Origin: Macrostomum lignano
Lineage: Eukaryota
DNA: 64,000 nucleotides
Assembly: GCA_002269645.1 (NCBI GenBank)
Contig: NIVC01003722.1
Location: 16,578 to 80,577, forward strand
Direction: 5' to 3'
Part shown: positions 8,293 to 62,589 of the stretch, piece by piece
Layout of the letters: each line of letters opens with the position of its first letter
Numbering within the stretch: position 1 is the first letter of the stretch
Notes under the pieces: model-generated
What the model saw: only the letters and a program-made list of their open reading frames with translations
Database searches by the model: none
Told to the model about the DNA's origin: nothing
Translations under genes and position numbers: made by a program

Positions 8293-8329
<37 letters not shown>

Positions 8330-8596: not shown

Positions 8597-8633
<37 letters not shown>

Positions 8634-14661: not shown

Positions 14662-17521
14662 CTAATACGTTGGACACCAGCTAGAAGCGTTCTTGACCGC
14701 GGTGACAAAAATCAGCAGCAAGACGGCCACAGAGCAGCTGACGGAGCAGATTATCAGCAGGCGGTCAATCGCTGAGCCAATCTGCTGCCACTCGGATCCC
14801 GGACTGGTTTTGATTGTTGTCATGGAAACCGACTCGAGCGATTGGGCTTGGTTGCTCTCCTTGCAGTTCTCAACGCTTTGCTGCAAAAATTGTGCGACAG
14901 TTGCTAACTGCATCCGAGTGAGTTATTAAAGACTCAGAACTTTATGCTCACCACAGTGTTCTTCCAGCCGCACAGGCGGTTGAGGAACAGCAGCCTCAGC
15001 ACTGGGCTGCTCACAGCCTCCCGCGATGCAGCTCTCCTGTAGCACAGGTGCACAACTATGCTGCCGATTGTGCTCAGAGCGGTCACAGCCATGGCCACCG
15101 TGAAGTACCAGGCTGGGGATGGGCAGAGACAGACTTGGCTCAGTGTAGCTGCATAGCACAGCACAGCACAGCACAGCACAGCACAATACAGCACAGCACA
15201 GCACAGCACAGCACAGCACAATACAGCACAGTACAGCACAGCACAGCACAGCACAGCACAGCACAGCACAACACAGCACAGCACAGCACAGCACAGCACA
15301 GCACAGCACAGCACAGCACACATCAATAGCCATACACTCTGACTCACTGAGCACTGGAACAGACTCGCTCTGAGCAGGGGTGATGCTGCCCGCCAGCTGC
15401 AGGAACACACTCATTGACAGCAGGATGGCCACATTCAGTGCCAGTCGGTCGCCCGAGTCCGCTGGCAGGAGAAAGCCGAAGATGCAGGTGGCGAGGATGA
15501 GGGCGCTGGGGATGATGAGCACGATGACGTAGTAGAGGGGCCGCCTCTGCAAAGGGATGGGGAGCGGGAGACTGAGCGGGCACTTAATGCCGAGCCTCGG
15601 GGACCTTTATATACGAGTATCTAGTTTCTATCTCACCTTGAAGCTGACAGTGATATTCACTATGTCGTGTTGTCCCATCTTACTATTCCAGGATGTATTG
15701 ACATTGGTGACGCAGAATTCATTATTTTGGCTAGCAGTCACGACAATCTGCTGGTCATTGGGTCTTGGTAAAGCCTTCAGCCTGATGTATTTACTACCCT
15801 TCGCTACTGAGGACAGGTAGATTGAGCAGTGCTGGGAGTCGAACGGGAAATCGTTCAGCTTCATCTTGCACTTGTTGGTTGTGCCGTAGGACAGCAGTGC
15901 CGTGACCTGGCCATTCGCGAGCACCTTCGCTAGCAGCCTGTTCTTCTCGAAGCTGCGAATGTCGATGCTATGAGAGAGGTTGAGTAGCTTTTAAGTGAGT
16001 TGGTGTCAAAAGTGCAATAATCATCGTATACTTTTTTATAAGCTTTAGTGAATCATATTTGAGTTAGTAGCCAGCCAAAGATCATGAAAGATACATCGCT
16101 TCATATCTTTTTACTTATCATTATAAGTAAAGTACCAGTCAGAGGTTTGAATTATAAGCCGCAAAAACACCAAATATTTCTAATACTGAATACCACGGAC
16201 AACTAAAGCAACGTACAGGACGCGACACTGTACGAGCTAAATCTATACAAAATGTTTTGAAGGCCACTGTTCGCCGAGAAATACACTATGTAGATAGAAA
16301 GTTTTCATTTTTTCAGCTCAAAAATTGTTATTGCTTTCAATAGGAGGCAGACCCAATGCTCATCTTTGAGTTGTCCTTGGCTTACTGTGTAACAATATGT
16401 GTAACAGAAATGATAAAATAGATGCATACGAGCTAAAACTAAAGATTCGAGCCGTGCCATGCATTTTAATGATTTTTTAGGTACAGGAAATGTACGTAGA
16501 ATATGAAATTAACATAGAATCCCAATTTTCCGAACAAAGAGCTTTACGAATATCAATAGAGATCTTATCCAAAGATGAGCATTGCGTCTGCCTCCTATCG
16601 AAAGCAATAACAATTTTTATGCTGAAAAAAGAGAACTTCCTATCTCCGTAGTTCTACCATGTCCTTCTACTTTAGTAGTCCTTGCTGAATACTACTTTCG
16701 ATTGTTGGCAATTCAGTAGTATCGACTAATTTTGAATCAATTTTTATCAGGAGCGAATCTGGTGATTGGCCAGTTGTGCCGTCTGAACGGATTTTGCAAT
16801 GGTTCGCTCCTTCATCCAACGTGGAGCTGTGGGATTTCGAGGAGTTTGAGACGCGATCCCGGACGAGAAGAGAAGATAAGAGCAACTTTTGCACTTGAGC
16901 TATGGAGCTAATAAACTGAAATCTGATGTCGCACTCACGGCCTCATCACAATGACATCCGGCACCCAAATCATGTCGAGTGGCAGGAAGATTTCGTCAGT
17001 TGTCAGCAGCTCAGCATTGCCCGACCTGTCCCAGGCCAGTCTCCTGTCAGTCCATTGCTTGGGGGCGGAAGAGTTACAAAGGTTTTTTTCAGCATGAATG
17101 TAACATCAATATTTCTAATAACTCATCAAGCTTACCAGCATTATGTAGCTGTCAAGAGAAAACAACTGCTTCACATCATTCTGGAACAGCACAAGATGGA
17201 GCATCGTTATCGGACAGGGGTTAATTGAATTAGCGCTAGCGCTACATCACTATTTTTGGACATCTATGGTATTTACTGGTGCCAACTCACCACTTCAAGC
17301 AGCTCGTTGACAAGGCAGTCCACAGTAACCAAGGTAGCGGTGCCATTGTCCTGCGGCGGAGCCGCCTCCTTGCAGTACCTGGCGGTCAGGTTCAGCCATC
17401 GGATCACCTGCTCCTCTCCAGATGCCGCTTCTTCTGTTTGAGAATGCACTCCTGATGACAGCAAGACGAGCACTGCTACGCAGAGTCTGCAGCAGAGGTC
17501 TGAGTATTGTTGAGTCCGCAT
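14662..17521 (-). CDS. Divergent nAChR-like Cys-loop ligand-gated ion channel subunit, copy A (443 aa, non-alpha type)
   Basis: Seven exons: 17521-17291, 17180-17136 (the 45-bp exon typical of nAChR genes), 17057-16939 (WTDRRLAW...WVPD), 15967-15637 (Cys-loop CKMKLNDFPFDSQHC), 15546-15348 (M1-M2, SGDRLALNVAILLSMSVF), 15112-14952 (M3), 14907-14662 (EW..I...IDRL, M4). Total 1332 nt in frame, all GT-AG. Confidence 0.9.
15153..15321. repeat. (CAGCA)n microsatellite in intron 5 of channel copy A
   Basis: Pentamer run read directly. Confidence 0.95.
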
Positions 17522-19187: not shown

Positions 19188-22100
19188 CTAGTTGCTCTTG
19201 TTAGCGGTGGCGCCCAGCAGCACGGTGACGGCCACGGAGAGGCTCACAACGCAGACCAGCATCAGTCTGTCCAGCACGCAGCTCACATGCAGCCACTCGT
19301 CTCCAGGATCGCGGCAGCCGTCCTGGACGCTGGCGAGGCTGCTGCTGGATGATGAGGCGGCCGCGGCCTTCGATGTGGCGCTGCTGACTCGGTAATTCTG
19401 GCGAAAAATGAGAGCAATTTAAAGATTCGACAAGCTGTCAGCAGATAAAGTAAGAGCAACGTCGGAAAATCTAAGTACATATGAGAGAGCACGCACCGAC
19501 CAGCCGCACAGGCGGTTGAGGAACAACAGCCTCAGCACTGGGCTGCTCACAGCCTCCCGCGATGCAGCTCTCCTGTAGCACAGGTGCACAACTATGCTGC
19601 CGATTGTGCTCAGAGCGGTCACAGCCATGGCCACCGTGAAGTACCAGGCTGGGGATGGGCAGAGACAGGCTTGGCTCAGTGTAGCTGCACAACACAGCAC
19701 AGCACAGTACACCACAGCATAGCACAGCACAGCACAGCATAGCACAGCACAGCACAGCACAGCACAGCACAGCACAGCACAGCACAGCACAGCACAGCAC
19801 AGCACAGCACAGCACAGCACACAGCCCAGCACAGCACAGCACAGCACAGCACAACACAGCACAGCACAGCACAGCACAGCACAGCACAGCACAATACAGC
19901 ACAGCACAGCACAGCACAGCACAGCACAGCACAGCACAATACAGCACAGCACAGCACAGCACAGCACAGCACAGTACAGTACAGCACAATACAGCACAGC
20001 ACAGCACAGCACAGCACAGCACAGCACAGCACAGCACAGCACAGCACAGCACAACACAGCCCAGCACAGCACAGCACAGCACAGCACAACACAGCACAGC
20101 ACAGCACAGCACAGCACAGCACAGCACAATACAGCACAGCACAGCACAGCACAGCACAGCACAGCACAGCACAATACAGCACAGCACAGCACAGCACAGC
20201 ACAGCACAGTACAGTACAGCACAATACAGCACAGCACAGCACAGCACAGCACAGCACAGTACAGCACAGTACAGTACAGCACAGCACACATCAATAGCCA
20301 TACACTCTGACTCACTGAGCACGGGAACGGACTCGCTCTGAGCAGGAGTGATGCTGCCCGCCAGCTGCAGGAACACACTCATTGACAGCAGGATGGCCAC
20401 ATTCAGTGCCAGTCGGTCGCCCGAGTCCGCTGGTAGGAGAAAGCCGAAGATGCAGGTGGCGAGGATGAGGGCGCTGGGGATGATGAGCACGATGATGTAG
20501 TAGAGGGGCCGCCTCTGCAATGGGATGGGGAGCGGGAGGCTGAGCGGGTAGTCAGAACAGAGACTGCTGTGCAATGAGTGAGTACCCAGCACCTCTCAAA
20601 CATGCGGTATCTTACCTCGAATTCAACTGTAACCAAAAGCTTCTTGAATTGGGGAAATTGGGTGCTGAAGTCAATAATGACTGAGCGCACACTAGTAACA
20701 CAGTACTCATTGTTCTGCAGGTTTATCTCGCTGTAGTTGATAGGCAGCCCACTTTTTATCTCAAGCTGCAAAAGCGTCTGCTTCTTCGCCGCTGACGAGA
20801 AAGAAAACTGGCAAACTTGCGTGTCAAATGGAAAGTCGCGCATCTTCAGCGGGCACTTGATGGTTATGCCGAGCGGCGTTTCCAGTTTCATCCTACCGTT
20901 CGAGCTCACGTCAACCAAGAATTTGTTGGTTTCAAAGCTTTTGACGTCAACCCTGTCAAAATATTTACGAGAGTATTTGATAAAAGACTGGGCTGTCTAT
21001 GGCCGAGTGCAGTTCTGTGGCAGTGGCTTTGGTTGGCTTCATTGTCTATGGCCGAGTGCAGCTCTGTGGCAGTGGCTTTGGTTGGCTTTATTGTCAATGG
21101 CCGAGTGCAGTTCTGTGGCAGTGGCTTTGGTTGGCTTCATTGTCTATGGCCGAGTGCAGTTCTGTGGCAGTGGCTTTGGTTGGCTTCATTGTCTATGGCC
21201 GAGTGCAGCTCTGTGGCAGTGGCTTTGGTTGGCTTCATTGTCTATGGCCGAGTGCAGCTCTGTGGCAGTGGCTTTGGTTGGCTTTATTGTCAATGGCCGA
21301 GTGCAGTTCTGTGGCAGTGGCTTTGGTTGGCTTTATTGTCTATGGCCGAGTGCAGCTCTGTGGCAGTGGCTTTGGTTGGCTTTATTGTCTATGGCCGAGT
21401 GCAGCTCTGTGGCAGTGGCTTTGGTTGGCTTTATTGTCTATGGCCGAGTGCAGCTCTGTGGCAGTGGCTTTGGTTGGCTTTATTGTCTATGGCCGAGTGC
21501 AGCTCTGTGGCAGTGGCTTTGATAGGCTTTATTGTCTATGGCCGAGTGCAGTTCTGTGGCAGTGGCTTTGGTTGGCTTTATTGTCTATGGCCGAGTGCAG
21601 TTCTGTGGCAGTGGCTTTGGTTGGCTTTATTGTCTATGGCCGAGTGCAGCTCTGTGGCAGTGGCTTTGGTTGGCTTTATTGTCTATGGCCGAGTGCAGTT
21701 CTGTGGCAGTGACTTTGGTTGGCTTTATTGTCTATGGCCGAGTGCAGTTCTGTGGCAGTGGCTTTGGTTGGCTTTATTGTCTATGGCCGAGTGCAGCTCT
21801 GTGGCAGTGGCTTTGGTTGGCTTTATTGTCTATGGCCGAGTGCAGCTCTGTGGCAGTGGCTTTGATAGGCTTTTTTGATAGGCTGCAGCGAAAGGGGACT
21901 CTCCACCTGATCGGCTTTATTATCAACCAATATAAAAATCAATGCCATATTAAATTGGCAAACAGAACTCACGGATGGCTCAGACTCAAGTCCGGAAGCC
22001 ACACATAGTCTGTTGGTAGAAAGATCTTCTCAAACTTGGCCAGTTTGGGATCGTCGGTCTCGTTCCAGGCGAGTCGCAAATCCGTCCAAAACTGAAAATT

Positions 22101-24206: not shown

Positions 24207-27200
24207 TCAGCAAGCTACAAAGCCGCTATTAGCAGCTGTGACGAAAAGCAGCCCGCCAACAGCTGCAGCGGACAGGACAGCGCAGGCAATCAGCAGCCGG
24301 TCCACTGCAGAGCCGATGTGACGCCACGCATCCGCGGGGTCGCTGCCTTGAAAACCGCACAGGCGGTTGAGGAACAGCAGCCTCAGCACTGGGCTGCTCA
24401 CAGCCTCCCGCGATGCAGCTCTCCTGTAGCACAGGTGCACAACTATGCTGCCGATTGTGCTCAGAGCGGTCACAGCCATGGCCACCGTAAAGTACCAGGC
24501 TGGGGATGGGCAGAGACAGGCTTGGCTCAGTGTAGCTGCACAGCACAGCACATTACAGCACAGCACAGCACAGCACAGCACAGCCCAGCACAACACAGCA
24601 CAGCACAGCACAGCACAGCGCAGCACAGCACAGCACAGCACAGCACAGCACAGCACAGTACAGCACAGTACAGCACAGCACAGCACAGCACAGCACAGCA
24701 CAGCACAGCACAGCACAGCACAGCACAGCACAGCACAGCACAGCACAGCACAGCACACATCAATAGCCATACACTCTGACTCACTGAGCACTGGAACGGA
24801 CTCGCTCTGAGCAGGAGTGATGCTGCCCGCCAGCTGCAGGAACACACTCATTGACAGCAGGATGGCCACATTCAGTGCCAGTCGGTCGCCCGAGTCCGCT
24901 GGCAGGAGAAAGCCGAAGATGCAGGTGGCGAGGATGAGGGCGCTGGGGATGATGAGCACGATGATGTAGTAGAGGGGCCGCCTCTGCAAAGGGGTGGGGT
25001 GCGGGAGGCTGAGCGGGCACTCAGCACAGAGACTGCTGTGCAATGGGGTGGGGAGCGGGAGGCTGAGCGGGCACTCAGCACAGAGACTGCTGTGCAATGG
25101 AGTGGGGAGTGGGAGGCTGAGCGGGCACTTAGCACAGAGACTGCTGTGCAATGGGGTGGGGAGCGGGAGGCTGAGCGGGCACTTAGCACAGAGACTGCTG
25201 TGCAATGGGGTGGGGAGTGAGAGGCTGAGTGATGCAGCTGGTAAAGCACAGATGTTCAACTCATCTGCTACTTGCCTTGAAGCTGATTGAAACCTGAACT
25301 TTTTCGTAATATTCATAGATAGATACTTTTGAAGTTTCGATGTGGCTGATGCAGAATTCGTTGCTCTCCTTGTTAAGATCGGCATAGGTTTTGTTTGCCT
25401 CCTGTCCCAATTCAAGCTGCAAATCCGCAGGCGTTTTCACAGCCGAGGAGAAGGTTGCGTTGCACTGCTGGGAGTCGAAGGGAAAATACGCCATGTTCAT
25501 CGGACACCTGCTGGTTACTCCGTATGGAATGCCGATTATTACAGTTCCACTTTGGTAGACAATAGACAAGTGTTTATTGGCCTCATAATTGCGGATTTCG
25601 ACTCTGCGTTGCAGGAGTAGGTATTGATCTGTGTTCGCCACAATGACAAGGCATTGCTTTTAAAGTTACATGATACATGCACATCTACATGATACATGCA
25701 CATCTACATGATACATGCACATCTACATGATACATGCAAAACTACATGATACATGCACATCTACGTGATACATGCACAGCTACATGATACACATCCGCAA
25801 CTACATGATACACATAAACAGTTACATGATACACATACGCAACTACCGGTACATGATACACATACACAGTTACATGATACACTTACACAACTACATGAAA
25901 CACATACAGAACTACATGTTACTCATACGAAACCCTAAAACACAACCACAGTTAGTTACATGATACACATATACAGTTAAATAATACACATACACAGCTA
26001 CATGATACACATACGCAACTACATGATACACATATACAGTTACATAATACACATACGCAACTAAATGATACACATACACAGTTACATGATACACATACGC
26101 AACTACATGATACACATAAACAGTTACATGATACACACACGCAACTACATGATAAACATATACAGTTACATGATGCATGAACTTACGGGTGGTCCACGGT
26201 CACATCGGGCAGCCACAGCCAATCAGTCGGCACGAAGATTTTCTCAACCTTGGCTAAGCTTTCATCGCTTGTGTCATTCCAGGCTAATCGGGCATCTGTC
26301 CATCTCTGAATAATTTTTTTTATTAATGGCACATTGCTATGCTCGTAACTGCATATGAGATTTGATTGAGCTGAGATGCATATGACATTTGGTTGACCTG
26401 AGATGCATATGACATTTGGTTGAGCTGAGATACATATGAGATTTGAATGAGCTGAGATGCATATGAGATTCGATTGAGCTGAGATACATATGAGATTTGA
26501 TTGAGACGAGATACCTATGAGATTTGATTGAGCTGAAATACCTATGAGATTTGATTGAGGTGAGATACCTATGAGAGTTGATTGAGGTGAGATACCTATG
26601 AGAGTTGATTGAGGTGAGATACCTATGAGAGTTGATTGAGGTGAGATACCTATGAGAGTTGATTGAGGTGAGATACCTATGAGATTTGATTGAGGTGAGA
26701 TACCTATGAGATTTGATTGAGGTGAGATACCTATGAGAGTTGATTGAGCTGAGATGCATATGAGATTTGGTTGACCTGAGGTGCATATGAGATTCGATTG
26801 AGCTGAGATGCATATGAGATTTGATTGAGGTGAGATACCTATGAGAGTTGATTGAGCTGAGATACCTATGAGAGTTGATTGAGGTGAGATACCTATGAGA
26901 TTTGATTGAGCTGGGGTGCACACACTGAGATGTAAACGATGGCTTACCAGTATCATCCAGAGGTCAATGGACACTTGCTGTTTCACAATATCCTGAATGG
27001 CAGCAGCAACAGCTTTATTACACAAAGGTAGAGTTGAGCACAAGATGCACAAGCTGCACTCACCACGCTGCTCAATCGAACAACTTTAATGGACACAATG
27101 ACAACATTCGCTGTGCCATTGTCTGGAGGCGGCGCCGCGCCCTTGCAGTAGCCGGAGGTGAGGTTCAGCAGCTCGACAATTCTCTCCTGGTTGGACTTCC

Positions 27201-29429: not shown

Positions 29430-32400
29430 TCAGAATTCAGAAAATCTTATTTTTCTCAAAGCGGGCTCGCAGTCGCCGCTCCCCGCCGCGGTGAGAGCCA
29501 GACAGATCAGAATGCCAGCTGAAGCAACGATCGCGCCGAAGGCCAGCAGCCGATCGATGATGCGACCGATTTGACGCCACTCGGCAGTTTCCATGGAAGT
29601 CGTTGCTGGGGCGACGCTCGTTTGCTTGCCGACCTGGTCAGCCCAGGCGGAGTCGTCATCGGCCTGCTTTGGGGCGGAATGAAATGCTCAGGTGAAAATT
29701 TAGAGGCAGGCATGGGGCTCGAACTCAGGAGCTCCAGACAGAGTACACATCAGATTTAGGAAGTCAGAACCATTGCCATGTAAAAGTCCAGAATCTCTGC
29801 TAATTAATCTAAAATGCGCTAAATAACAAATTTACAAGCAGAACTCTTAGCTCGTCTCACCACAGTGTTCTTCCAGCCGCACAGGCGGTTGAGGAACAGC
29901 AGCCTCAGCACTGGGTTGCTCACAGCCTCCCGCGATGCAGCTCTCCTGTAGCACAGGTGCACAACTATGCTGCCGATTGTGCTCAGAGCGGTCACAGCCA
30001 TGGCCACCGTGAAGTACCAGGCTGGGGATGGGCAGAGACAGGCTTGACTCAGTGTAGCTGCATAGCACAGCACAGCACAGCACAGCACAGCACAGCACAG
30101 CACAGCACAGCACAGCACAGCACAATACAGCACAGCACAGCACAGCACAGCACAGCACAGCACAATACAGCACAGCACAGCACACCACAGCACAGCACAG
30201 CACAGCACTGCACACATCAATAGCCATACACTTGGACTCACTGAGCACTGGAACAGACTCGCTCTGAGCAGGAGTGATGCTGCCCGCCAGCTGCAGGAAC
30301 ACACTCATTGACAGCAGGATGGCCACATTCAGTGCCAGTCGGTCGCCCGAGTCCGCTGGCAGGAGAAAGCCGAAGATGCAGGTGGCGAGGATGAGGGCGC
30401 TGGGGATGATGAGCACTATGACGTAGTACATCGGCAGTCTCTGGAGTGTTGAGTGTAAATATTTGGCCAGAAATTGAAACAAAATATTTGCGTTATAACA
30501 ATGCAGTCGTCAGTCAACTAAAAGTCTGTACCTTAAAAGTAATGATAACCTCCATCTGGTGGTAACTAGAATAGACCCATTTCAGAATCGAGTCAACGGC
30601 AGTGACGCAGTACTCGTTGCTGCGGAGAAACCGAATCGATAGGTCAATAGCGATGCTTCGCACCACTCTGAGCCGCAGCGAATTGGGCGGTCTCTGGCCC
30701 GAGGCCATGCTGAAATTGCACTGCTGTTTGTCAAACGGAAAGCTGGCCAGCTGCATGTTGCATTTTTTTGTTAAGCCGAATGCCAGCTTGGTTTGCACCT
30801 GACCGTCTGAGCTGATCTCGGCTAGCAGTTTGCTCTGATCGTGGTTGCGAATCTCCACACTGGAAATGTTCAGGCTATGGTTGTGAAGTTCGGGCACAAG
30901 GAAAATAAGGATACTCGTAGAAGTGCAGGAGAGATAAGGATAGGAATACAGGTGAGATAAAAAAGGATAGGAATAAAGGTGAGATAAGGCTAGGAATACA
31001 GGTGAGATAAGGATAGGAATACAGGTGAGATAAGGCTAGGAATACAGGTGAGATAAGGATAGGAATACAGGTGAGATAAGGATAGGAATACAGGTGATAT
31101 AAGGCTAGGAATACAGGTGGGATAAGGATAGGAATACAGGTGAGATAAGGATAGGAATACAGGTGAGATAAGGCTAGGAATACAGGTGAGATAAAAAGGA
31201 TAGGAATAAAGGTGAGATAAGGCTAGGAATACAGGTGAGATAAGGATAGGAATACAGGTGAGATAAGGATAGGAATACAGGTGAGATATGGATAGGAATA
31301 CAGGTGAGATAAGGATAGGAATACAGGTGAGATAAGGATAGGTATACAGGTGAGATAAGGCTAGGAATACAGGTGAGATATGGATATAAATACAGGTGAG
31401 ATAAGGATAGGAATACAGGTGAGATAAGGATAGGAATACAGGTGAGATAAGGCTAGGAATACAGGTGAGATAAGGAGAGGAATACAGGTGAGATATGGAT
31501 AGGAATACAGGTGAGATAAGGAGAGGAATACAGGTGAGATAAGGATAGGAATACAGGTGAGATAAGGATAGGTATACAGGTGAGATAAGGCTAGGAATAC
31601 AGGTGAGATATGGATATAAATACAGGTGAGATAAGGATAGGAATACAGGTGAGATAAGGATAGGAATACAGGCGAGATAAGGCTAGGAATACAGGTGAGA
31701 TAAGGAGAGGAATACAGGTGAGATATGGATAGGAATACAGGTGAGATAAGGCTAGGAATACAGGTGAGATAAGGAGAGGAATACAGGTGAGATATGGATA
31801 GGAATACAGGTGAGATAAGGATAGGAATACAGGTGAGATAAGGATAGGTATACAGGTGAGATAAGGCTAGGAATACAGGTGAGATATGGATATAAATACA
31901 GGTGAGATAAGGATAGGAATACAGGTGAGATAAGGATAGGAATACAGGCGAGATAAGGCTAGGAATACAGGTGAGATAAGGAGAGGAATACAGGTGAGAT
32001 ATGGATAGGAATACAGGTGAGATAAGGCTAGGAATACAGGTGAGATAAGGAGAGGAATACAGGTGAGATATGGATAGGAATACAGGTGAGATAAGGATAG
32101 GAATACAGGTGAGATAAGGATAGGTATACAGGTGAGATAAGGCTAGGAATACAGGTGAGATATGGATATAAATACAGGTGAGATAAGGATAGGAATACAG
32201 ATGAGAAAAGGATATAGGAACACTCGGAAATAAAGATACGAGTAGAAACACAAAAATTAGTATTGAATAAGAAGTCAATAAAGAATCCCAGCCGTGCGAT
32301 GTGTGAAAGTTGATGGCATAAATTACAAGCGGCACCCACCAATGTCTGACACAGTCTCCAAAGTGGATTTAATTATAAGCCGCACCATTTTAAAGTAAAG

Positions 32401-34403
32401 TGTCTTTAAAGTGTCTGTCAAGCCGCATGGGTGGTCAAATATTGCTAATGGATGCCCAGAGCCTGTCAGTTTTAGACACCATTCGGAGCAAATAGATAAG
32501 TAGGATAGTTATCAAACTCACGGCTGGCTAACGCTGATGTCAGGTGTCCACAGCCAATCCAGAGGCGCGTAGATGGCGCCAACTGCGGCCAGTTCCGGTC
32601 TGGCGATTCCTTTCCAGGCTAGTCGGGGGTCTGTCCAGTTCTGTTGTATTGACATCAGTGTGGCAGAAATGATTGATGAGTCAACACGTTGGCTTTGGAG
32701 TGAGGCTGCGGGTTGGAAGGTTGTCCCAAGGTTGATGCAAATAGATCGATGAGGAAGGTGTATGCTTGTATGTGTGCTTGGAAGTAACGAGAAGGCTGTG
32801 TTTGGGAAGTGAGGCTGGCATGGGAGTCAGGGGGAGAGGGTGGTATGAGAGTCAGGGGTGAGCTTTGTGGCATAAGAGTCAGGGGGAGAGGGTGGTATGA
32901 GAGTCAGGGGTGAGCTTTGTGGCATAAGAGTCAGGGGGAGAGGGTGGTATGAGAGTCAGGGGTGAGGTTTGTGGCATAAGAGTCAGGGGGAGAGGGTGGT
33001 ATGAGAGTCAGGGGTGAGGTTTGTGGCATAAGAGTCAGGGGGAGAGGGTGGTATGAGAGTCAGGGGTGAGGTTTGTGGCATAAGAGTCAGGGGGAGAGGG
33101 TGGTATGAGAGTCAGGGGTGAGGTTTGTGGCATAAGAGTCAGGGGGAGAGGGTGGTATGAGAGTCAGGGGTGAGGTTTGTGGCATAAGAGTCAGGGGGAG
33201 AGGGTGGTATGAGAGTCAGGGGTGAGGTTTGTGGCATGAGAGTCAGGGGTGAGGTTTGTGGCATGAGAGTCAGGGGATGAGGCTTGTGGCATGAGAGTCA
33301 GGGGTGAGGCTTGTAGCATGAGAGTCAGGGAGTGAGGCTTGTGGCATGAGAGTCAGGGATTGTGAGGGTGGCATAAGAGTCAGGGGTGAGGGTGGCATGA
33401 GAGTCAGGGATTGTGAGGGTGGCATGAGAGTCAGGGATTGTGAGGGTGGCATGAGAGTCAGGGATTGTGAGGGTGGCATGAGAGTCAGGGGGTGAGGTGG
33501 CATGAGAGTCAGGGATTGTGAGGGTGGCATGAGAGTCAGGGGGTGAGGTGGCATGAGAGTCAGGGGTGAGGGTGGCATGAGAGTCAGGGATTGTGAGGGT
33601 GGCACGAGAGTCAGGGGTGAGGGTGGCATGAGAGTCAGAGAGTGAGGTGGCATGAGAGTCAGGGGTGAGGGTGGCATGAGAGTCAGGGGTGAGGGTGGCA
33701 CGAGAGTCATGGGTGGTGGTTGGCATGAGAGTCAGAGAGTGAGGTGGCATGAGAGTCAGGGGTGAGGGTGGCACGAGAGTCATGGGTGGTGGTTGGCATG
33801 AGAGTCAGGGGTGAGGGTGGCATGAGAGTCAGGGGTGAGGGTGGCACGAGAGTCATGGGTGGTGGTTGGCATGAGAGTCAGAGAGTGAGGTGGCATGAGA
33901 GTCAGGGGTGAGGGTGGCACGAGAGTCATGGGTGGTGGTTGGCATGAAAGTCAGGGGTGAGGGTGGCATGAGAGTCAGGGGTGAGGGTGGCACGAGAGTC
34001 ATGGGTGGTGGTTGGCATGAGAGTCAGAGAGTGAGGTGGCATGAGAGTCAGTGCATGTTTAACAGACTGCTTACCATGGAAACTCTGTTCTCCAGCACAA
34101 TGAACTGCTTGACCATGTCCTGTAAAGAGCACAAATAAATTAACAAATGAGAATGCGATGATTTAGCGCAAATCCGGACAAACCGGCTCTACTTACGACA
34201 TCAATGAGCTTGACTATCTCAATCATGATGGTCACAACGACGGCCGTGCCATTGATCGGTCTCGGACTGGCGCCTTTGACATAGCCGCCGTTGGTGAGAT
34301 TCAGCATCCGGATGATCTGCTCATCGACAGACGCGTCATCGGCGACAGGTTCCGCCGCATTGGTTGCTAGGAGCAGCTGTGCTAAAATCCCTGCCAGTAG
34401 CAT
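29430..34403 (-). CDS. Divergent nAChR-like Cys-loop channel subunit, copy D (about 430 aa)
   Basis: Exons 34403-34197, 34119-34075, 32640-32522, 30859-30532 (CNMQLASFPFDKQQC), 30440-30242, 30021-29861, 29663-29430 (AEWRQIGRIIDRL). Total 1293 nt in frame. Confidence 0.9.
30061..30208. repeat. (CAGCA)n microsatellite in intron 5 of copy D
   Basis: Pentamer run. Confidence 0.95.
30930..32205. repeat. 23-bp minisatellite (AGGATAGGAATACAGGTGAGATA)n
   Basis: Intron 3 of copy D. Confidence 0.93.
32815..34050. repeat. G-rich minisatellite of about 24 bp (GAGAGTCAGGGGTGAGGGTGGCAT)n
   Basis: Intron 2 of copy D. The same family occurs at 39385-39775. Confidence 0.9.
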
Positions 34404-39300: not shown

Positions 39301-42300
39301 ACATCCTGCCGATACTGCTGGCGCTTGGCCAGCTGCCCAACGTGTCTCTGTGAGAATCTGCGCGATAATACTGAGTTTTATCGAGTGTCAGGGAGTGAGG
39401 ATGGTGTGAGAGTCAGGGAGTGTGGATGGTGTGAGAGTCAGGGGTTGAGGGTGGCATGAGAGTCAGGAGGTGAGGGTGGCATGAGAGTCAGGGGGTGAGG
39501 GTGGCATGAGAGTCCGGGGTGAGGGTGGCATGAGAGTCAGAGAGTGAGATGGGATAAGAGTCAGAGAGTGAGGTGGCATGACAGTCAGTAAGTGAGGTAG
39601 GATGAGAGTCAGGGAGTGAGGTGTGAAGCGTGAGAGTCAGTGAGTGAGGTAGGATGAGAGTCAGGGTGTGAGGCGGGTGGCATGAGAGTCAGTAAGTGAG
39701 GTAGGATGAGAGTCAGGGAGTGAGGTATGAAGCGTGAGAGTCAGTGAGTGAGGTGGGGTGAGAGTCAGTGAGTGAGAGTTATCAAGCCGCTCACCTCATT
39801 GCCACAACGCACTGGCATTTCAGCCTGGCAGCCGAGTACATGCTGTGGTTCTCACCAGGGGTCATAGTAAGTGACCAGATTCCTACAGTTGCCGCTCAGA
39901 CTTGGCGGGCACAAAGACCAATGTCGTTATTGTTATTGTTCATAATAATTCCAGTTCAACTTTTTCTACCTGATCCTGGCTCGGTACTTGCAAAATCAGG
40001 ACCGAGTCTACGCGCCAATGCTCTGCGCAGTGGCTGGCAACGTTTTCAATTTGATCTCGCAGTACCTCTGCATCTACGTGTGGAACTTCGGCTTCGTGTG
40101 AGTCGTCAGTTTTCATAGGTTTTCAGTTTTTGGCGTCGTTCGGTGCGTTTTGCTCGAGCGCTTACCTCCCCCAGCCATGGACGCTCACCCTATGGATACT
40201 TACTCCCGAGTCAAAGACACTCACCCTATGGATACTTACTCCCGAGTCAAAGACACTCACCCTATGGATACTTACTCCCGAGTCAAAGACACTCACCCTA
40301 TGGATACTTACTCCCGAGTCAAAGACACTCACCCTATGGATACTTACTCCCGAGTCAAAGACACTCACCCTATGGATACTTACTCCCGAGTCAAAGACAC
40401 TCACCCTATGGATACTTACTCCCGAGTCAAAGACACTCACCCTATGGATACTTACTCCCGAGTCAAAGACACTCACCCTATGGATACTTACTCCCGAGTC
40501 AAAGACACTCACCCTATGGATACTTACTCCCGAGTCAAAGACACTCACCCTATGGATACTTACTCCCGAGTCAAAGACACTCACCCTATGGATACTTACT
40601 CCCGAGTCAAAGACACTCACCCTATGGACGCACCCCCCCGAGGCGACTCGAGTCAAGGACACTCACCCTATGGACGCACCCCCCCCCGAGCGACTCAAGT
40701 CAAGGACACTCACCCTATGGACGCACCCCCCAAGCGACTCGAGTCAAGGACACTTACCCGATGGACACTTACCCCTTCCCCCGAGTCAAGGACACTCACG
40801 CTATGGACAGACCCCCTGAGTCAAGGACACTCGCACTATGGACACACCCCCGAGTCAAAAGCACTCACCCTATGGACACACCCCTGAGTCAAGGATACTC
40901 ATCCTATGGATACACCCCCGAGCGACTCGAGTCAAGAACACCCCAGAGTCATCCCAGAGTCAAGGACTTGACTTACTTTGACTTAGCTGCAGGGTGGTCC
41001 GTAGACACAGCGGGGAGGCGAGGGTCGCCCATTCCGCTAGCCCCTGAAGGCCCGCAGACAGGCAGAGGCGTGGGGCCGGTCAGGGTGGTCCGCCGGTCCG
41101 TCCTGCAGCGTGATCTTCCGTTGGGAAGAAACTGGCTCGTCTAGTCGCCCGAAGGAACTGGATGAGCCGTGGGATGCTGTCGGGCTGGCAAACCTCGTCA
41201 ATGGACGGGTTCGGCCCGAGGTAGCGTAGCCGGTCTCTGTTAAAGAAAGGGCAGTGACAGACAAAGTGCTGAGCATCTTCATTGTCGCACTCGCAAAAGG
41301 GGCAAATTTCGCTCTCGAGGTCGCCTCGGAGGAAGCAGTGCCTGGCGAGGTAGCCATGGCCGGTAAGGGTCATGACAAGGGCTCGAATATCCTTCCGATT
41401 CTGGTTCAGAAGGATGTTTCTGAGCCTGTGAGACGGGCAAGGAACCGCGGCACGAGATTGCCGGCAGTTTTGGGTGCCCGCCCATCTGTCCCTGTGGAGG
41501 GAGTCAGCCCAGTCGTCGATCTGACGATTGATGACTGTCAAGGGCATAGGGACCAGGGGGGCAGGGCCGAAAAAAGAGCCAGAGCCGCCCCTCTTGGCGA
41601 GGGTGTCTGCCAGCTCGTTCCCCGGAAACCCTGCGTGCCCTGGGATCCACTTCAGCCTGACAGTATTGCTTCTGGCCAGGAGGTTGAGCTGCCGGGCGCA
41701 GTCGGCGACTGTCCGGGAGTTCGTTGTGGTGTGGCAAAGGGCCTGTAAGGCCGCTTGGCTGTCGGAGTGGATGACAATAGTCTTTCCTCTCGTAACCTTG
41801 GCGTTTAGCTCTGCAGCGCAAGAGCTGATGGCAAGGACTTCGTTCTGGAAGACTGTGGAGAGTCTACCAGTGTGCTGGGCATGCGTGGCAATTACGCGGC
41901 CGTTGATGATGATGCAGACCCCAAAGCCGGCGCGACCGTCTTTGATGGATCCGTCCGTGTAGCAATGGACCTCCTGGAAATTCCAGTGGTCATTGGCAGC
42001 ATCCCTAGAGGGGATGGTGACCTTGTAGCGCTGAAAGAGGTTGAGAGTGCGGGGTTCGCCGTCAGATAGGACGTGGAGCCCGCCGCTGTCTCTCAAGTCC
42101 TTGAGGCAGAGGTCAGCGTGGGGCAGAAGCTTGCGCTTAGCCATGGCCCTATGGGGCTGGATTCGAATGCCAGCGTCAGCTAGACGGCGGGCAGTCTTAG
42201 CCGCTTCCCTGCGGACAAAGATGTCCAGCGGAGGAATGTTGAGGAAGGCGTTGAGGCCATCGTAAGGAGCAGACGGAGGGGCGCTCATGATCGTGCGACA

Positions 42301-45300
42301 AGCGCGCCCTTGCGCTCTCCTGAGAGCCTCTAGACAGGTCTTTATCTGCAGGGCGCTAGCCCAGATCAGGCCGCCATACGAGATAGCGGGCCTAACCATT
42401 GCAGTGTAGATCCACCAGAGGCGCTTGGGGGTGAGCCCCCAGGTGGTGCCGACGGCCCTGCGCAATTGCGCGAGGACTGCGAAGGCCTTTTTGGCTTTTG
42501 TTTGAACGTGGGGAGACCAGTTCAGCCTGTGGTCCAGGGTAATACCCAGACATTTAGTCTGCTTGCAGAAGGGGATTTCCCTTCCGTAAAGCGTGAGCGG
42601 CCGAATCTGCCACTTGGTCCTGCTGGTGAACATGATCGCTGCGGTCTTAGTCTCAGAGAGCCTTAAACCACAGCGGTCCGCCCATTGCTCAGCAGCGTAG
42701 ATGAAGTTCTGAAGAAGGTCCCTGAGGGTATCAGGGGACGGACCAGATGCCACCGCGGTGACATCGTCCGCATATCCAACTTTCAGAATGGGGTCAGGCC
42801 GAACATCCCGGAGGAGCTCATCGATGACCATATTCCAGAGAACTGGAGACAGCACCCCACCTTGCGGGCTACCTTTGCAGACGGGGACCGTCCTCTGGTA
42901 GCCCAGCAGACTGGCGGTGGCCGTGCGATGGCTGATCATGTACATGATCCATCTGGTGAGATGTGAGTGCGTTAGCCTCTCACAAAGAGCTCTTCGGAAC
43001 GCCTCAAAGAGGACGTTATCGAAGGCGCCAATGATGTCCAGGAAGATCCCCAGAGCAAAGCCACTACCAAGCACGGCCTTCTCGAGTTTATCGACCAGGA
43101 CGTGCAGCGCGCTTTCAGTGGAGCGACCCGCCCGAAAAGCGTGCTGGTTCTCGCTGAGAGGTTTGTTCTTCAGCTCAACAGAGAGAAGGCGCCAAAGCAC
43201 CAGTCTCTCCATCAGCTTGACCAGGGAGGAGGTCAAGCTGATCGGTCTGAAGGATTTGATAGAATGGTAGTCCGGGCGGCCTGGCTTAGGGATAAAGATC
43301 ACCTTTGCCTCGGTCCATGCCTGCGGGACATAACCAAGCGTGATGCATGCCCGAAGAAGGCTGCAAAGTTTGCGCAGGAAGCCTGGGCATTTAACCGCCT
43401 CTCTCAGAAGGGCCGGTACAATGCCGTCGGGTCCTGGGGCTTTGAAAGGCTTGAAGGAATTTGCCGCTCTCACAATGCGGTCCTCCGTGATGATAGATGC
43501 AGCCAGCGCGTGACCTCCCTCCGAGTGATCCGGAGTGGTCTGGTTAGCTGGCTCGTTAGGGAAAAACGCAGTGAGCATTACATCAAGCGTTTCCCCTGGG
43601 TTGTCCGTGGACGTACCGTCGGTGCGTTTGACCGAGGAGAGCTTAGACATTTTGTCCAGCGTGAGCGCTTTCACAACTCTGGAGGTGGGGCGTGAGCCCT
43701 CTAGCTCCTCACAGTATTGTCGCCATTTTTGAGCCTTTGCATTCCTAACCTGCCTTTTAAACTCATGAATTGCTTCATGATAGGCGGTTTGGTCTGCAGG
43801 GCTCTTAGTTTTAGTTGCTCTGCGGTGGAGTCTCTTAGCCCTGCGACGGAGGTTGCCGAGCTCGGGATTCCACCACGGCGCCGATTTTTTCCCTTTATAG
43901 GCTTTTAAAGGGCAGGACGCCTCAAAGGCGGCGGTTAGCGTCTCTGTCAAAACAGTCGCGCACTCATCCGCCTCTCGGCACGACGTGATCGTGAATGGTT
44001 GGCCAGGAGACCGATGGAATTCCTTCAGGGCGAGCCCGAAGGTTTCCCAATCAGTATTTCTGGCGTTCCGTCTCCACATAACACGAGTTGCGCTACGCGC
44101 GGCCATTAGGTTGAAGGAGATGAACTTGTGATCCGATAGTGAGGACACTGGAAGCACCCGCCACGCCCCAATACTCTGGTAGAGTCTGGGCGTTGCGAGC
44201 GTAGCGTCGATCACCTCCGACCACCGTCCGTTGTCAAAGGTAGGGGTGGACCCAGAGTTGCAGAACTCGAGGGTCGTAGAGGCAACGTAGGCTAGGAGGT
44301 CTTCGCCTCTCTGATTAATGCCAGTGCTGCCCCAGTGAGTGTGGTGGGCGTTGATGTCGCCGGCAACCATGAGCTCGTAGTTTTTGGCAGAGCAGAGCTC
44401 TACCAGCGTAGCGAGGGCTCTGGGGACGACCGCAGCATCGCCTGGTAGGTAAACCGAGGCAATGAGGGTGGTCTTCCCAGGAAGAAGGTCCTCGGATTGG
44501 ATGACGCAGATGTCCCTGTTGGACAGGTCCGATCTGAGCCACGCACTGAGCGTTTTGCTCGCAAAGATGCAAGCTCTGGGAGGCTGGTTGGCCTCGCGAG
44601 GGTAAGTATAAAAACAATTGTAGCCAGCAGGGGCGTTTTGAGGCTTACCTCTGAGAGTCCAGGGTTCCTGGACGAGGATGAGCCCCGGCTTGTCGAGCTC
44701 GGCGTAACGCATAAGGTTGACCGAGGCTGCGACGCAGTGCTGCAGATTAATCTGCAGGCAATGGATTCCCTGGTTGCTGATCATTATCACGCAGTTGGGG
44801 AATCGTTGAGCAGGTCATCCTCCTCCTTTTCAGTGGTGGGTGACCCGCAGACCTCCATGGGAGTTTCAGCGTCCTCAGCAGTTAGGGTGGCTGTGGAGTC
44901 CTCCGCGGACGTGAGCCCAGCGTGGACGTTACCGTCGCCTCTCCTGCGTGCTTCGGTGCTGTCACTGCCCGTCCCCTCTGCCTCGTCGGTCAGGTCGATG
45001 CGGGTGGCGCCAGCCTCCTGGTGAGTCACAGACTCGAACCAGTCGGTCGGAGCCTCCCCGCTTAGAGTCTGGCCTTCTGGCTGTTGGGGTGGAGCGCGAG
45101 AAGCGCGGGCCCGCTCACGATGCGCACGAAGGTTCTTGGCCTGGTCCAGCGCGCGCTGGATCAGGCCGGACCTCCGGGTGCTCCTGGCGGGTCTGCGATT
45201 GCGATTTCCGGTTTCAGCAGCGCGAACTGCCTTACCGGGCATAGGATCGGCCGTTTGCCTCGGCTTCTTTGCCGGAGGAGCCTGGGCCCCAGTTCCGGTT

Positions 45301-48300
45301 TCGGAAGCTTTGGCATTCTTGGCTTCATCAGCTTTCCGCTCCTCGCAACGGAGGATGGTCAGCTGAGTCAGACCAATATGAATTGTGGACTTAGGCGGCA
45401 AGCGCTTAGCCCAGTCATCAGAGAGCCCTAGGATCACCGTAGCCCCCTTCTCCTTGCGGGAAGTGGCGTGGTGTAGGAGCCCGTTGACCTTAAGGTCGGG
45501 GTGCAGCTTTAGCAATATTTGCCTAAGCTGATCTCCGGACTTAATGGCACTGCCGGCCGGGATCCAGACGCGAAAGCGCTGGGTCTTCTGTCGTTCGCCC
45601 TCGCTGGCGAAGACGAGCTTGCCGAGCTTCTTGGGCCAGTTCAGCTTTGGCAGAAGCTCGCGTAGATTGCGGCTGCTCTCCTCCGAGCTGCACCAGATGA
45701 AGATGCAGCCGTCGGTCTTGGCAGACTTGACCACGCTCACAGGGCGGCCCGCCAGGAGCTGGTCGATGAGCGCAGCATCGATGGTGCGCCAGGCACTGTC
45801 GAGCTCGTCGGCCGTGAGGTCCTGCTCTTCCCCGAAGACGATGACCGCCGGTTGGAGCTTGACCTTTGAGGCGTAGTTGGTGGCGGCGGTTCCCGAAGGC
45901 CCGGCCGCGCTTGTAGCAGGTATACTGGGTGGCTCACCAGCGGGGGTTGTATCCTGGGGGCAGGGGTTGCTGTGGTTCCTTTCGGCCCAACAGCAGCCTC
46001 GCCCTCCCTAGGTTCCCCTTCCGCCGGTGGCCGGCCCGCAGTACCCCGTAGTCGCCGTCGCCGCTCGTTGCGGCGTTGGTTGCGGGTGCGTCGGGCTTCA
46101 GCGGAGGGCCCGGTTGCGCGTGCGGGCATGTCACCAGCCGAGCCGGCGGCAAGCCCATCTGCCCCCGGTGGGGCGGCGCTGGTGCCAGAGTCACCGGCCG
46201 GAGTTGCCGGGGCCCCGGCTTCAGCGGGGGTTAAAGAGGCGGATGACGCCATAGCTGAAAGCGGGAAGGAGTGAGCTGAGTCACAAAAGAAAGAGGAAAG
46301 AAGAAAAAGAAAAGGACCGCTAGCGACCGGACAACCCCCCGGCCTTCCAGCCCATCGGCACGGTCAAACACCTTAGGCATTAGGGGTACGTTAAGCAGTA
46401 CCACGGCCTGCAGGCTGGCAAGCCAGACCCGCATACCCAAATTCGGCCGAAGCCACTGGATGGGTCGCCAGCGTCGGAGCCCAGTCTGTCCAGCAGCCCT
46501 AGGGTCTGCCTTGAACACACGCGGGGACGAGTACCCTGGGTCGACTTGTGAAACAGCGTGAGGGGGGGGGGTCTGCGGCTGCCAGTGGCAAATAGCGGGT
46601 GCAGACCTCCCTCTCCAGCCTTGACCTGCTGAATATAGGGGCAGGCGTGAAGCATCGCAGACCGTAGCCCTTAGGCCTGGTCTGTCTCATACTTCACTGG
46701 CGTGCTGAATACACCTTCGCGTGCCAGAGTCAAAGACACTCACCCTATGGATACTTACTCCCGAGTCAAAGACACTCACCCTATGGACGCACCCCCCCGA
46801 GGCGACTCGAGTCAAGGACACTCACCCTATGGACGCACCCCCCCCCGAGCGACTCAAGTCAAGGACACTCACCCTATGGACGCACCCCCCAAGCGACTCG
46901 AGTCAAGGACACTTACCCGATGGACACTTACCCCTTCCCCCGAGTCAAGGACACTCACGCTATGGACAGACCCCCTGAGTCAAGGACACTCGCACTATGG
47001 ACACACCCCCGAGTCAAAAGCACTCACCCTATGGACACACCCCTGAGTCAAGGATACTCATCCTATGGATACACCCCCGAGCGACTCGAGTCAAGAACAC
47101 CCCAGAGTCATCCCAGAGTCAAGGACACTCACCCTATGGACACACCCCCCGAGTCAAGGACACTCACCCTATGGACACGCCCCTGAGTCAAGGACACCCT
47201 CCTATAGGACACTAATCCTATGGACACCTCACCATATGGGCACTTCCCTAAGTGATGGACACTCATATTACCTCAGGTCTGCCCCACCCCACCTCTGGCC
47301 TGGCACTTAAATAAATTCTCATTGATTCGAAGTTTGACCCTCTCTTTGCCTTCCACTTCATGGAAGTTGTGTTTGTGCATGACATGCACAAACAGCGCCT
47401 CACGCAGCACCAGCTGCAGATAACCCGATCCCAGCTCTCCCCATTTCACTCTCGCCCAGTTCGAGCGCAGTCTGCCAGGCCCTGACCTTCGTCATCATGT
47501 TCGTCCTGCTGATTGGTTACATCGTCTTCAGCCATGTGTACGTGGAGACCTGGAATGGCTGGGACGTAGAGAGCCTCTTCAACTGGTGGCAGTTTCTCAA
47601 GCTGGCCCTGCCGGGAATGGGAATGGTCAGCTTGGAAACCTTCTGCTGGGAGGTTGGCACCTTTGTGGCCGGTGAGTGGCGCTTGACTAACTGCCGAACA
47701 ACTGACTGAGCTTCTAAATGTGCACTTATAAAAACCAGAAAAGCTGGTTCATTAATCTTTCTTCCTCAAGAGTCTCGAGTCAAAATAAAAACAGTGAAAT
47801 TAACGCAGCCATGCCCATTCCTGAGCAGTCACACGGACACGCACGCAGGCTCACACTCATACGATATAAAAATCTCTCCGCAGGCTACATGGGCGAGGAA
47901 GAGCTGGGCGCTCAGTCTATCCTATTTCAAACTGAAACCTGGACTTTCATGGTAAGCCAGTCCCAACTCTGGGGGCATCAAGCCCGAGTGAGCTAACGGT
48001 AGATAGATTAAAGTGACACTCCGAAACGCACCCGCAGATTGCTCTCGGCCTGTCGATTGCGGTCAACATCCGGGTTGGCCAGAGCCTGGGCGCTCTGAAC
48101 GGCAGCCGGGCCAAGCTGGTGTGGCTGGCCGGCTGCTGCTGCCTGCTCTGCTCGGCCACCGTCACTACCATCATCTTCATCACCTGCCGCAGCCTGCTGC
48201 CCTACATGTTTACTAACGACGCGTACGTTAATCACTGCTAAAGTGCATCTCATATAACGCTTTTGCCTTCTAGTAGGTCGTTTGGTGTTTCAGTTTCGCG

Positions 48301-59225: not shown

Positions 59226-59339
59226 GACCGGAAGCGAATAAGCTTGAGCATTTTAGATCCTGATATCCATCATAACCATAGCCATAATAATCTAGGTGGC
59301 GACTCGTTAATTTAAAATTTCTAACACAACCATACTTTA

Positions 59340-59790
59340 CAGTATCCTACAGCCTTATCAGCAGCCCCAGCATCTTACAGCCTCATCAGCAGCCCCAGCA
59401 TCCTACAGCCTCATCAGCAGCCCCAGCATCCTACAGCCTCAACAGCAGCCCCAGCATCTTACAGCCTTATCAGCAGCCCCAGCATCCTACAGCCTCAACA
59501 GCAGCCCCAGCATCTTACAGCCTTATCAGCAGCCCCAGCATCCTACAGCCTCATCAGCAGCCCCAGCATCCTACAGCCTCAACAGCAGCCCCAGCATCCT
59601 ACAGCCTCATCAGCAGCCCCAGCATCTTACAGCCTCATCAACAATTCCAGCATCCTACAGTCCAGTCCCATCAACAGCCTCAGCATCCAAAAATATATCA
59701 ACAGCCTTAGAATCCCAGTCTCAGCAACAATTCCAGCATCCTACAGTCCTATAAACAATTCCAGCATCCTACAGTCTCAGCAAAAACTCC
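59340..59790. repeat. 28-bp minisatellite (CAGCATCCTACAGCCTCATCAGCAGCCC)n
   Basis: A related degenerate array occurs at 62055-62290. Confidence 0.87.
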
Positions 59791-61931: not shown

Positions 61932-62054
61932 CTGCATCGGTATAAAAAAGCCAACAGTTAATTAAGCAACTCTATTTGTACCTCGATATAGACTAGCCTC
62001 GCTGACTTAAAAATCATCCGGGTGCTAAATTTTACTCGGATGAGCATTAAACAG

Positions 62055-62290
62055 GCTCATCAACAGTCCCAGCAGCTCACAGCCTCATCAACAGTCTGCA
62101 TCCCACAGCCTCATAAACAGTCCCTGCATCCTACAGCCTCATTAACATTCCCAGCAGCTCACAGCCTCATCAACAACCCCAGCATCCCACAGCCTCATCA
62201 ACAGCCTCAGCATCCCACAGTCTGCCCAGCAGTCCCAGCATCCCACAGCCTTATCAACAGCCTCAGCATCCCACAGTCTGCCCAGCAGTT
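62055..62290. repeat. Degenerate CAGCATCCCACAGCCTCATCAA array
   Basis: Same family as 59340-59790. Confidence 0.75.
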
Positions 62291-62589
62291 GTCGCGAAAT
62301 TTCAGCTTACGCTAATAGAATTCACTTGCTCCCTTTTCATTTTCTTCCATTCCCTGTGTGCCTAGTCCATCTTCTATCTCTTATCTTGTTTTCCGATTAT
62401 CGATCGGTGAGTTTTCAGTCAGCCCCCCCCCTCGGTCTCGTTAGAGCATTTTAGCCCTCGCCCTTCTTACCCATTTTCTTCTTATCTATTCTCTACCCCC
62501 CTCTCTCAACCACGCAAATAAATATACTGCTGGAGGAGCCTTTTCATCTTAACTTTGTTTTTCAAGTTGTTATTGTCAACGTATTCACT

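Follow-up and report, generated by a model that had tools for sequence, protein, structure and literature searches.

An exact 400-bp duplication of host minisatellite brackets a full-length non-LTR retrotransposon in Macrostomum lignano

Second-strand cutting and completion is the least understood step in the integration of long interspersed nuclear elements (LINEs), also called retrotransposons that lack long terminal repeats (non-LTR), and target duplications of great length are among the few natural traces of this step taking another course. The R9 elements, which belong to the R2 group, carry a restriction-like endonuclease (RLE), are site-specific for 28S rDNA and, as far as is known, leave a 126-bp duplication at every insertion. 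This length of target-site duplication (TSD) in the R9 rDNA LINEs of bdelloid rotifers is taken from later papers that cite the original work (Gladyshev & Arkhipova 2009, as cited in PMC9977147, PMC13486585). At de novo insertions of Dualen-4b_cRei in Chlamydomonas mutation-accumulation lines, more than half of the duplications exceed 50 bp, with a median of 900 bp; these have been called longer than those of R9 and are read as very long TSDs from distant nicks (PMC9977147). For L1, TSDs of >100 bp make up as many as 10% of the events in HeLa cells and 57-91% of those in cells deficient in nucleotide excision repair (PMC5223499), and tandem duplications of 1-10 kb found with L1 insertions have been classed as large TSDs (bioRxiv 10.1101/2024.12.14.628481). 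When the R2 protein no longer nicks the second strand proximally, large duplications become more frequent among its insertions (PMC13486585). Here we show that, in a 64,000-nucleotide stretch of the flatworm Macrostomum lignano (contig NIVC01003722.1, positions 16,578 to 80,577; referred to as the window and numbered from its first letter), a full-length LINE whose ends are defined from its relatives separates two exact copies of a 400-bp block of host minisatellite, named D. This arrangement probably arose by a recent insertion, through target-primed reverse transcription (TPRT), of a full-length RNase-H-bearing LINE of the apurinic/apyrimidinic endonuclease (APE) type into the minisatellite, with breaks 400 bp apart that gave a 400-bp target duplication.

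The locus is a new example of a known phenomenon, the long LINE duplications of L1, R9 and Dualen, in a new host and a new LINE lineage, and not a new mechanism. In the literature, we found no paper on LINE target duplications in M. lignano. A first-pass annotation of the window had regarded the 126 bp of R9 as exceptional, a view that is out of date given the Dualen median and L1 duplications that range from >100 bp to the kilobase scale. The M. lignano element is like R9 in being a non-LTR element with a target duplication far beyond the usual 5-20 bp, but it is of the APE type and has an RNase H, its copies are dispersed, and only one of them is known to have the 400-bp duplication. With Dualen it shares a LINE insertion that has duplicated host sequence on both sides. 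Dualen, however, has both an RLE and an APE, the proposed cause of its long stagger, and its long duplications are habitual, whereas the present element has an APE only and a distant relative with a 10-13-bp TSD. The closest match in behavior would seem to be the outliers of normal TPRT in human L1, an APE-type LINE with TSDs that are normally short and in which a distant second break occasionally leads to duplications of hundreds of bp or more. L1 belongs to a different clade, it has a poly(A) tail and a TTTT/AA target, and its events were scored in cultured or tumor cells. Here, in contrast, we are dealing with a fixed or segregating germline copy in a flatworm minisatellite, where a repeated motif offers a sequence-based account of the distal nick.

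The locus is organized as follows; L001 and L003 are relatives of the element, and P0012 and P0083 represent other copies of it.

40180-40567, no strand: left host minisatellite, outside the duplication, in near-perfect 36-bp units GAGTCAAAGACACTCACCCTATGGATACTTACTCCC (Tandem Repeats Finder and unit listing).
40568-40967, no strand: D copy 1, adjoining the 3' end of the element (400/400 identity to 46727-47126, and unit structure).
40958-40973, no strand: junction palindrome AGTCAAG-GA-CTTGACT, composed of target motif and element tail (read from the sequence).
40968-46726, minus strand: full-length non-LTR (LINE) retrotransposon, 5,759 bp (open reading frames (ORFs), Pfam, and the L001 homology from window position 46692 to 40975).
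40968-40994, minus strand: conserved 3' terminus with short repeat tail, in the sense direction CCCTGCAGCTAAGTCAAAGT followed by AAGTCAA, with no poly(A) (common to L001, L003 and P0083).
40968-41079, minus strand: 3' untranslated region (UTR), 112 nt, between the ORF2 stop codon (41080-41082) and the junction.
41080-44790, minus strand: ORF2, 1236 uninterrupted codons, with APE-type endonuclease, reverse transcriptase (RT), RNase H and a C-terminal Cys/His motif.
44787-46252, minus strand: ORF1, about 488 codons in other copies, here in two frames through a 1-bp deletion in a C-run.
46253-46726, minus strand: 5' UTR, 474 nt, with the 5' end of the element at 46726 (L001 homology at 46692-46652; P0012).
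46727-47126, no strand: D copy 2, adjoining the 5' end of the element (400/400 identity to copy 1).
47127-47244, no strand: right continuation of the host minisatellite, starting with ACTCACCCTATGGACACACCCCCC, which completes the unit that the final 11 nt of D open.

Pairwise comparison within the window gave 400 identical bases out of 400 for the two copies of D. Neither end of the exact match can be moved outward by one base, and the in-register identity of the sequence outside, 25-34%, is at the random level. D is made up of one perfect 36-bp unit, nine irregular units of 28-47 bp, and the first 11 nt (GAGTCAAGGAC) of the next unit. The first-pass annotation had matched this direct repeat by eye, irregular units included, on either side of a non-LTR retrotransposon, and the computed identity bears it out. 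It had also held the left edge to be ambiguous by one 36-bp unit, which is incorrect. Since copy 2 contains exactly one perfect unit followed by a unique transition unit, the register of the alignment and the 400-bp length are both fixed. The sole ambiguity of D concerns the 3' junction, where as many as 11 nt could be microhomology: with an element RNA ending in ...GUCCUUGACUC, these bases would count as such, and the length of the duplication would be 389-400 bp.

The sequence on the outer side of each copy is the same host array. Tandem Repeats Finder reports an array at 40180-40628 (period 36, 12.5 copies, 99%), in which 10 more perfect 36-bp units precede D from 40208. Irregular units of 34-47 bp follow this near-perfect array as far as 40967, and the same irregular units are found again at 46760-47126. 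To the right of D copy 2 there are two to three further degenerate units, reaching about 47244. Thus, the minisatellite runs on past both copies, as had been proposed. When the empty site is rebuilt from the left array (ending at 40567), a single D and the right flank (starting at 47127), the result is a seamless, in-phase array. The start of D is a unit boundary continuous with the perfect 36-bp array, and at the join between D and the right flank the 11 nt of GAGTCAAGGAC and the 24 nt of ACTCACCCTATGGACACACCCCCC restore a canonical 35-bp unit. These joins bear on the idea that the 400 bp is an LTR-like terminal repeat of the element, or a 5' or 3' transduced flank, that moves with it. Identical flanking direct repeats are indeed a hallmark of LTR, DIRS and PLE-type elements, but on each outer side D carries on the array without a break or a shift of phase. 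Transduction in either direction was rejected because the block would have to land in register beside its own identical copy.

The ends of the element were defined from its relatives, independently of D. The closest, L001 (a Logan contig from another sample), has an ORF2 that is 61% identical, and its homology to the window extends from 46692, in the 5' UTR, through 40975. Its contig starts about 2-10 nt from the equivalent of 46726, the 5' end of the element, and P0012 includes a translation of 46625-46455 in the 5' UTR. At the other end, the homology of L001 stops at ...CCCTGCAGCTAAGTCAAAGT|GACC..., and the window has the same terminus, ...CCCTGCAGCTAAGTCAAAGT-AAGTCAA. The contig of L003 (46% identity) ends in ...CCCCTGCAGATAAGTCAAGTCAA. 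A conserved terminus, ...CCCTGCAG-N-TAAGTCAA, followed by a short repeat is common to the element, L001 and L003. A-rich tails are present in L004 and L231, and relatives at 43-44% amino acid identity keep ...CCCCCTGC and then have an A-rich tail. In the relatives at 61%, 46% and 43-44% amino acid identity, the 3' UTR has the same end, ...CCCTGC(AG), and the tail after it is of the GTCAA type or A-rich, which places the 3' end of the element at 40968. The ends predicted from these sequences coincide with the inner edges of both copies of D. The element has no terminal repeats of its own and ends in a short repeat tail, and neither terminal direct repeats nor tandem repeats were found in L001. 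That relatives end where D begins, without terminal repeats, again argues against D as part of the element.

The nearest relative after L001 is P0002 (57% identity). L002 (34%) and L006 (29%) were set aside for comparison, being too distant and having 3' ends that are not comparable. A protein-guided scan of metagenome contigs gave no further copies or relatives. Exact scans of metagenome and genome contigs for the 3' motif CCCTGCAGNTAAGTCAA gave about 200 loci; tblastn showed ORF2 homology at none of them, and they are therefore all chance matches.

What the element does at other loci is also informative. It is present once only in the window. Its best database matches are chimeric M. lignano gene models with segments 95-100% identical to ORF1 and ORF2, in which copies adjoin or lie inside unrelated genes (peptidase S8, leucine-rich repeat (LRR) protein, ligand-gated channel, G protein-coupled receptor (GPCR) and SATB). 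Because these copies are 95-100% identical and are in or near unrelated genes, the family is young, multi-copy and dispersed. Thus, it does not behave as a target-specific LINE with all copies in the same target. For the junctions we used a composite query of all reading frames of the two ends of the element, with D left out. P0083, an M. lignano model from another locus, is a sense read-through of the ORF2 C-terminus and the 3' UTR. Its similarity stops at ...TLQLSQS, the translation of ...CTGCAGCTAAGTCAAAGT, and the flank ELVNRGGIGDPH... follows, which has not one 4-residue word in common with any frame of the left array or of D. The 400 bp thus appears not to travel with the element, at least at this one other locus with a readable 3' flank. 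The 5' junctions are unreadable through gene models because stops occur in all three sense frames within about 40 nt of the 5' end of the element. Repeats that move with the element, as in LTR, DIRS or PLE-like retroelements, would have to be reconciled with the same 3' terminus followed by unrelated sequence in P0083 and with the absence of repeats from L001, and we regard a mobile terminal repeat or transduced flank as scarcely credible. The seamless rebuilt array, the independently defined ends and the unrelated 3' flank at another locus together uphold the earlier proposal that the duplicated DNA is host target.

Three further M. lignano models, P0080, P0081 and P0082, splice into the antisense strand of copies in three unrelated genes. 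In each, a host exon (ligand-gated channel, lectin/globin and GPCR, respectively) is joined to LINE antisense sequence at the same point, ...QAEAWGRSGW..., at about 41060. This common join suggests a recurrent cryptic splice acceptor or a recurrent artefact of gene prediction.

With regard to coding capacity, ORF2 combines an N-terminal apurinic/apyrimidinic-like endonuclease with a reverse transcriptase, as expected of an APE-type non-LTR element. Pfam places PF14529 Exo_endo_phos_2 (1.4e-19) and PF03372 at residues 13-224, PF00078 RVT_1 (8e-31) at residues 500-750 and, C-terminal to the RT, PF00075 RNase_H (3.4e-14) at residues 940-1068. The description of ORF2 as intact holds over all of its codons, but ORF1 is not intact: relative to the unbroken ORF1 of P0005 and P0012, the window copy has one C fewer in the C-run at about 45956-45960. 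This frameshift could be a real inactivating mutation or a long-read homopolymer error. For ORF1 of this element, Pfam gave only a sub-threshold match to DUF4780; no domain above threshold was found in it or in ORF1 of L001, and the flanking ORF of L001 had no Pfam identification.

An error of this type, which is typical of long reads, would fit with an assembly artefact in which one 400-bp copy or one junction was created by mis-assembly of tandem repeats. The region is extremely rich in minisatellites, and the published assemblies were made from PacBio CLR reads with Canu and Pilon polishing and were called difficult (PMC5730564). However, both junctions are novel joins between element and array, neither can be derived from the other, and they coincide with the independently defined termini of the element. 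There are no Ns or gaps, and the whole D-element-D structure, about 7 kb, is within reach of a single read. Moreover, mis-assembly of tandem repeats usually alters the number of units and would not put an exact irregular 400-bp block beyond a 5.8-kb element. We therefore consider an artefact improbable.

The element resembles the I-like LINEs in having the order APE-RT-RNase H, a short-repeat tail, and relatives with (TAA)n tails and a DUF4780-type ORF1. It shares with I-factor-like (I/Nimb-type) elements this domain order, the C-terminal Cys/His motif, two ORFs and a 3' end of short repeats that is not poly(A). TSDs in the I/Nimb-type group are 10-14 bp. One relative with 36% identity, L005, lies on a 297-kb ENA contig; its tail is (TAA)n and its duplication, (A)TACGAAAAATGC, measures 10-13 bp, so short duplications seem to be normal in the wider group. 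L005 (4010-4025 and 9880-9900) is a complete I-like LINE with a DUF4780-type ORF1 and an ORF2 that is split into two called genes, for RT and RNase H. The present element differs from the I/Nimb type in its tail, which is an AAGTCAA(AGT)-type repeat and not (TAA)n, and in an ORF1 without an above-threshold Pfam match. The named database matches are insect, fungal and M. lignano models, none of which carries a clade label.

The two breakpoints are resolved to single bases and lie at the same motif. D begins with GAGTCAAAGAC and ends with GAGTCAAGGAC, which are the same 11-mer, GAGTCAA[A/G]GAC. There are 22 copies of this motif in the rebuilt empty site, and the motif copies at the two edges of D are ten copies (389 bp) apart. 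The nick on the plus strand would lie at the 3' edge of the 11-mer, and the nick on the minus strand opposite its 5' edge. Nicks phased in this way predict duplications of 11, 39, 82, ... 364, 400 and 436 bp, with 400 among them. The polarity of the duplication is as TPRT predicts: the first nick would be at the 3' end of the element, on the complementary strand, and the second at the far end of D, on the sense strand; the sense strand of the element is the minus strand of the window.

In the mechanism that we propose, the plus strand of the empty site would be nicked after ...GAGTCAAGGAC^ACTCACC (40967, equivalent to 47126). The resulting 3'-OH would prime cDNA synthesis from the RNA tail ...AAGUCAAAGUAAGUCAA, where the primer end GAC could pair with GUC of the tail. 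The minus strand would then be broken opposite 40567/40568, at the far edge of another copy of the 11-mer, 389 bp off, and the 3'-OH there would prime the second strand. Filling in of the two 400-nt 3' overhangs would give the two copies of D. Had both breaks been made in one motif copy, an 11-bp duplication would be expected, within the 10-13 bp of L005. With 22 motif copies on offer in the array, the second nick could plausibly have been misplaced. Widely staggered nicks at two copies of the repeat motif had been suggested before. This suggestion gains moderate support from the presence of the same 11-mer at both edges of D and from the agreement of 11 bp with the 10-13-bp range, although it concerns one event.

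Whether the motif itself directs the cleavage is a separate matter. We put forward, tentatively, that both nicks are placed by recognition of the 11-bp GAGTCAARGAC and not by distance from the first nick. Equally tentative is the alternative that the insertion and its duplication are genuine but the distal break was not made by the endonuclease of the element. It could instead be an unrelated nick, a replication or repair intermediate, or the outcome of break-induced or synthesis-dependent repair, with the motif phase a coincidence. A distal break of this kind is the favored account of large L1 TSDs (PMC5223499; bioRxiv 10.1101/2024.12.14.628481), R2 insertions without second-strand nicking also lead to large duplications (PMC13486585), and the chance of the phase coincidence is only about 0.1. 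The G-rich minus strand of the array may also be prone to structure or breakage: it has 18 runs of G3 or longer in D, and the plus-strand GC skew is -0.32. However, no canonical G-quadruplex motif is found on the G-rich strand, and we rejected breakage driven by G-quadruplexes for that reason. An endonuclease-independent break must also accommodate a 5' junction that lies exactly at the edge of the 11-mer which bounds the 3' junction as well.

The sequence next to the element tail allows a further comparison. The flank in the window, GTCCTTGACTCT, is identical at 10 of 12 positions to that of L001, GACCTTGACTAT (5957-5976), and the L001 flank begins GACCTTGACT. The P0083 flank, GAG-CTN-GTN-AAY, is a partial match to the window flank. 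Over the three 3' junctions, only a partial motif is held in common, G-[A/T]-[C/G]-C-T-(T)-G. This likeness could reflect at most a target preference, or it could come from terminal nucleotides or a hairpin belonging to the element. The 3' flanks of the window copy and L001 both begin G[A/T]CCTTGACT, which hints at a target preference, and such a preference would make repeated hits on the array of 22 motifs less improbable. This is relevant to a scenario in which the same element family inserted twice, independently and in one orientation, on two haplotypes or on duplicated chromosomes, into motif copies separated by 389 bp. A normal duplication of about 11 bp would have accompanied each insertion, and the two would have been joined inside the element by unequal crossover or chimeric assembly. 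The predicted D-element-D product is identical to the one observed, and the sequenced M. lignano line has duplicated chromosomes and 180 Mb of redundancy in its assembly (PMC5730564). However, this scenario requires two full-length insertions in the same orientation within 400 bp and then a further event. In addition, the family is not strictly site-specific, as copies are in or near unrelated genes and the P0083 flank matches only in part, and there is one insertion only among the 22 motif copies here. We judge two insertions to be very unlikely.

Two other routes to the structure were rejected. Unequal homologous crossover within the array would double the element or else put array of the opposite side between it and D, and neither is seen. 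A pre-existing D-D tandem with the element at its joint was rejected on parsimony, because an out-of-phase motif-to-motif joint and a zero-length TSD would be needed.

LINEs of the R1 group that target tandem repeats include TRAS and SART in telomeric repeats and Waldo, Mino, Kibi and Koshi in microsatellites. They are strictly target-specific, and their TSDs are unreadable in perfect repeats. The present insertion is similar in that the unit of the array holds the nick site and the sequence at the 3' junction is related to the tail of the element itself. It differs in that the family is dispersed among genes and in that the irregular array makes the duplication measurable.

We favor a single TPRT insertion with distant breaks as the probable origin of the structure, and several points weigh against it. 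It is a single event, and M. lignano assemblies are long-read assemblies of a repeat-rich and partly duplicated genome (PMC5730564). The argument from motif phase is weak when taken alone: wherever a periodic array is cut twice, some remainder is left, and with a chance of about 0.1 it falls in the 10-14-bp range. The 10-13-bp TSD comes from L005, which is only 36% identical, and not from the family of the window element; the only copy of that family with both junctions readable has 400 bp. Finally, P0083 is a gene model in which a splice exactly at the end of the element is possible, and it reports on the 3' side only.

The rest of the window gives the setting of the locus. It is a mosaic (positions 1-64000) in which at least 26 different minisatellite arrays score highly; their units measure 5-72 bp, and together they cover at least 18 kb (about 28%). 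This fits with the 15% of simple and tandem repeats reported for the M. lignano genome (PMC5730564). All ORFs of at least 250 amino acids, other than those of the LINE, overlap a detected array, save that at 7733-8731, which was outside the check. A dispersed repeat of about 0.6-1 kb occurs four times in direct orientation (14947-15584, 19500-20576, 24355-25045 and 29856-30443), with a spacing of about 4.5-5.5 kb. Its copies are 90-96% identical and contain a (GCACA)n / 10-bp array, and the sequence that separates them is unrelated. This repeat could represent a non-autonomous element, or else a conserved section of some larger repeat. The arrays at 32816-34051 and 39383-39776, about 5 kb apart, have closely related units of about 52 bp (GAGAGTCAGGG...GTGAGGGTGGCAT) and may represent a single array divided by other sequence or a pair of copies from the same array family. 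An array with a 28-bp unit is present in two blocks 2.5 kb apart (59258-59728 and 62042-62344) and may be another array broken by an insertion.

The locus is a clean example of a very long target duplication, in which a young full-length element, an exact duplication and an irregular target leave both breakpoints legible. It provides a testable idea, that the second nick is placed by sequence, in a genome with abundant tandem arrays. If nicks are placed by the motif, a single motif should give an 11-bp duplication and arrays should give quantized lengths of 11 bp plus the motif spacing, here 11 + 389 = 400. Should this be true of other copies too, the choice of the second-strand cleavage site by an APE-type LINE would be naturally readable from irregular minisatellites. 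At this one locus, the structure points to a route by which a LINE insertion may duplicate hundreds of host bases and reshape minisatellites.

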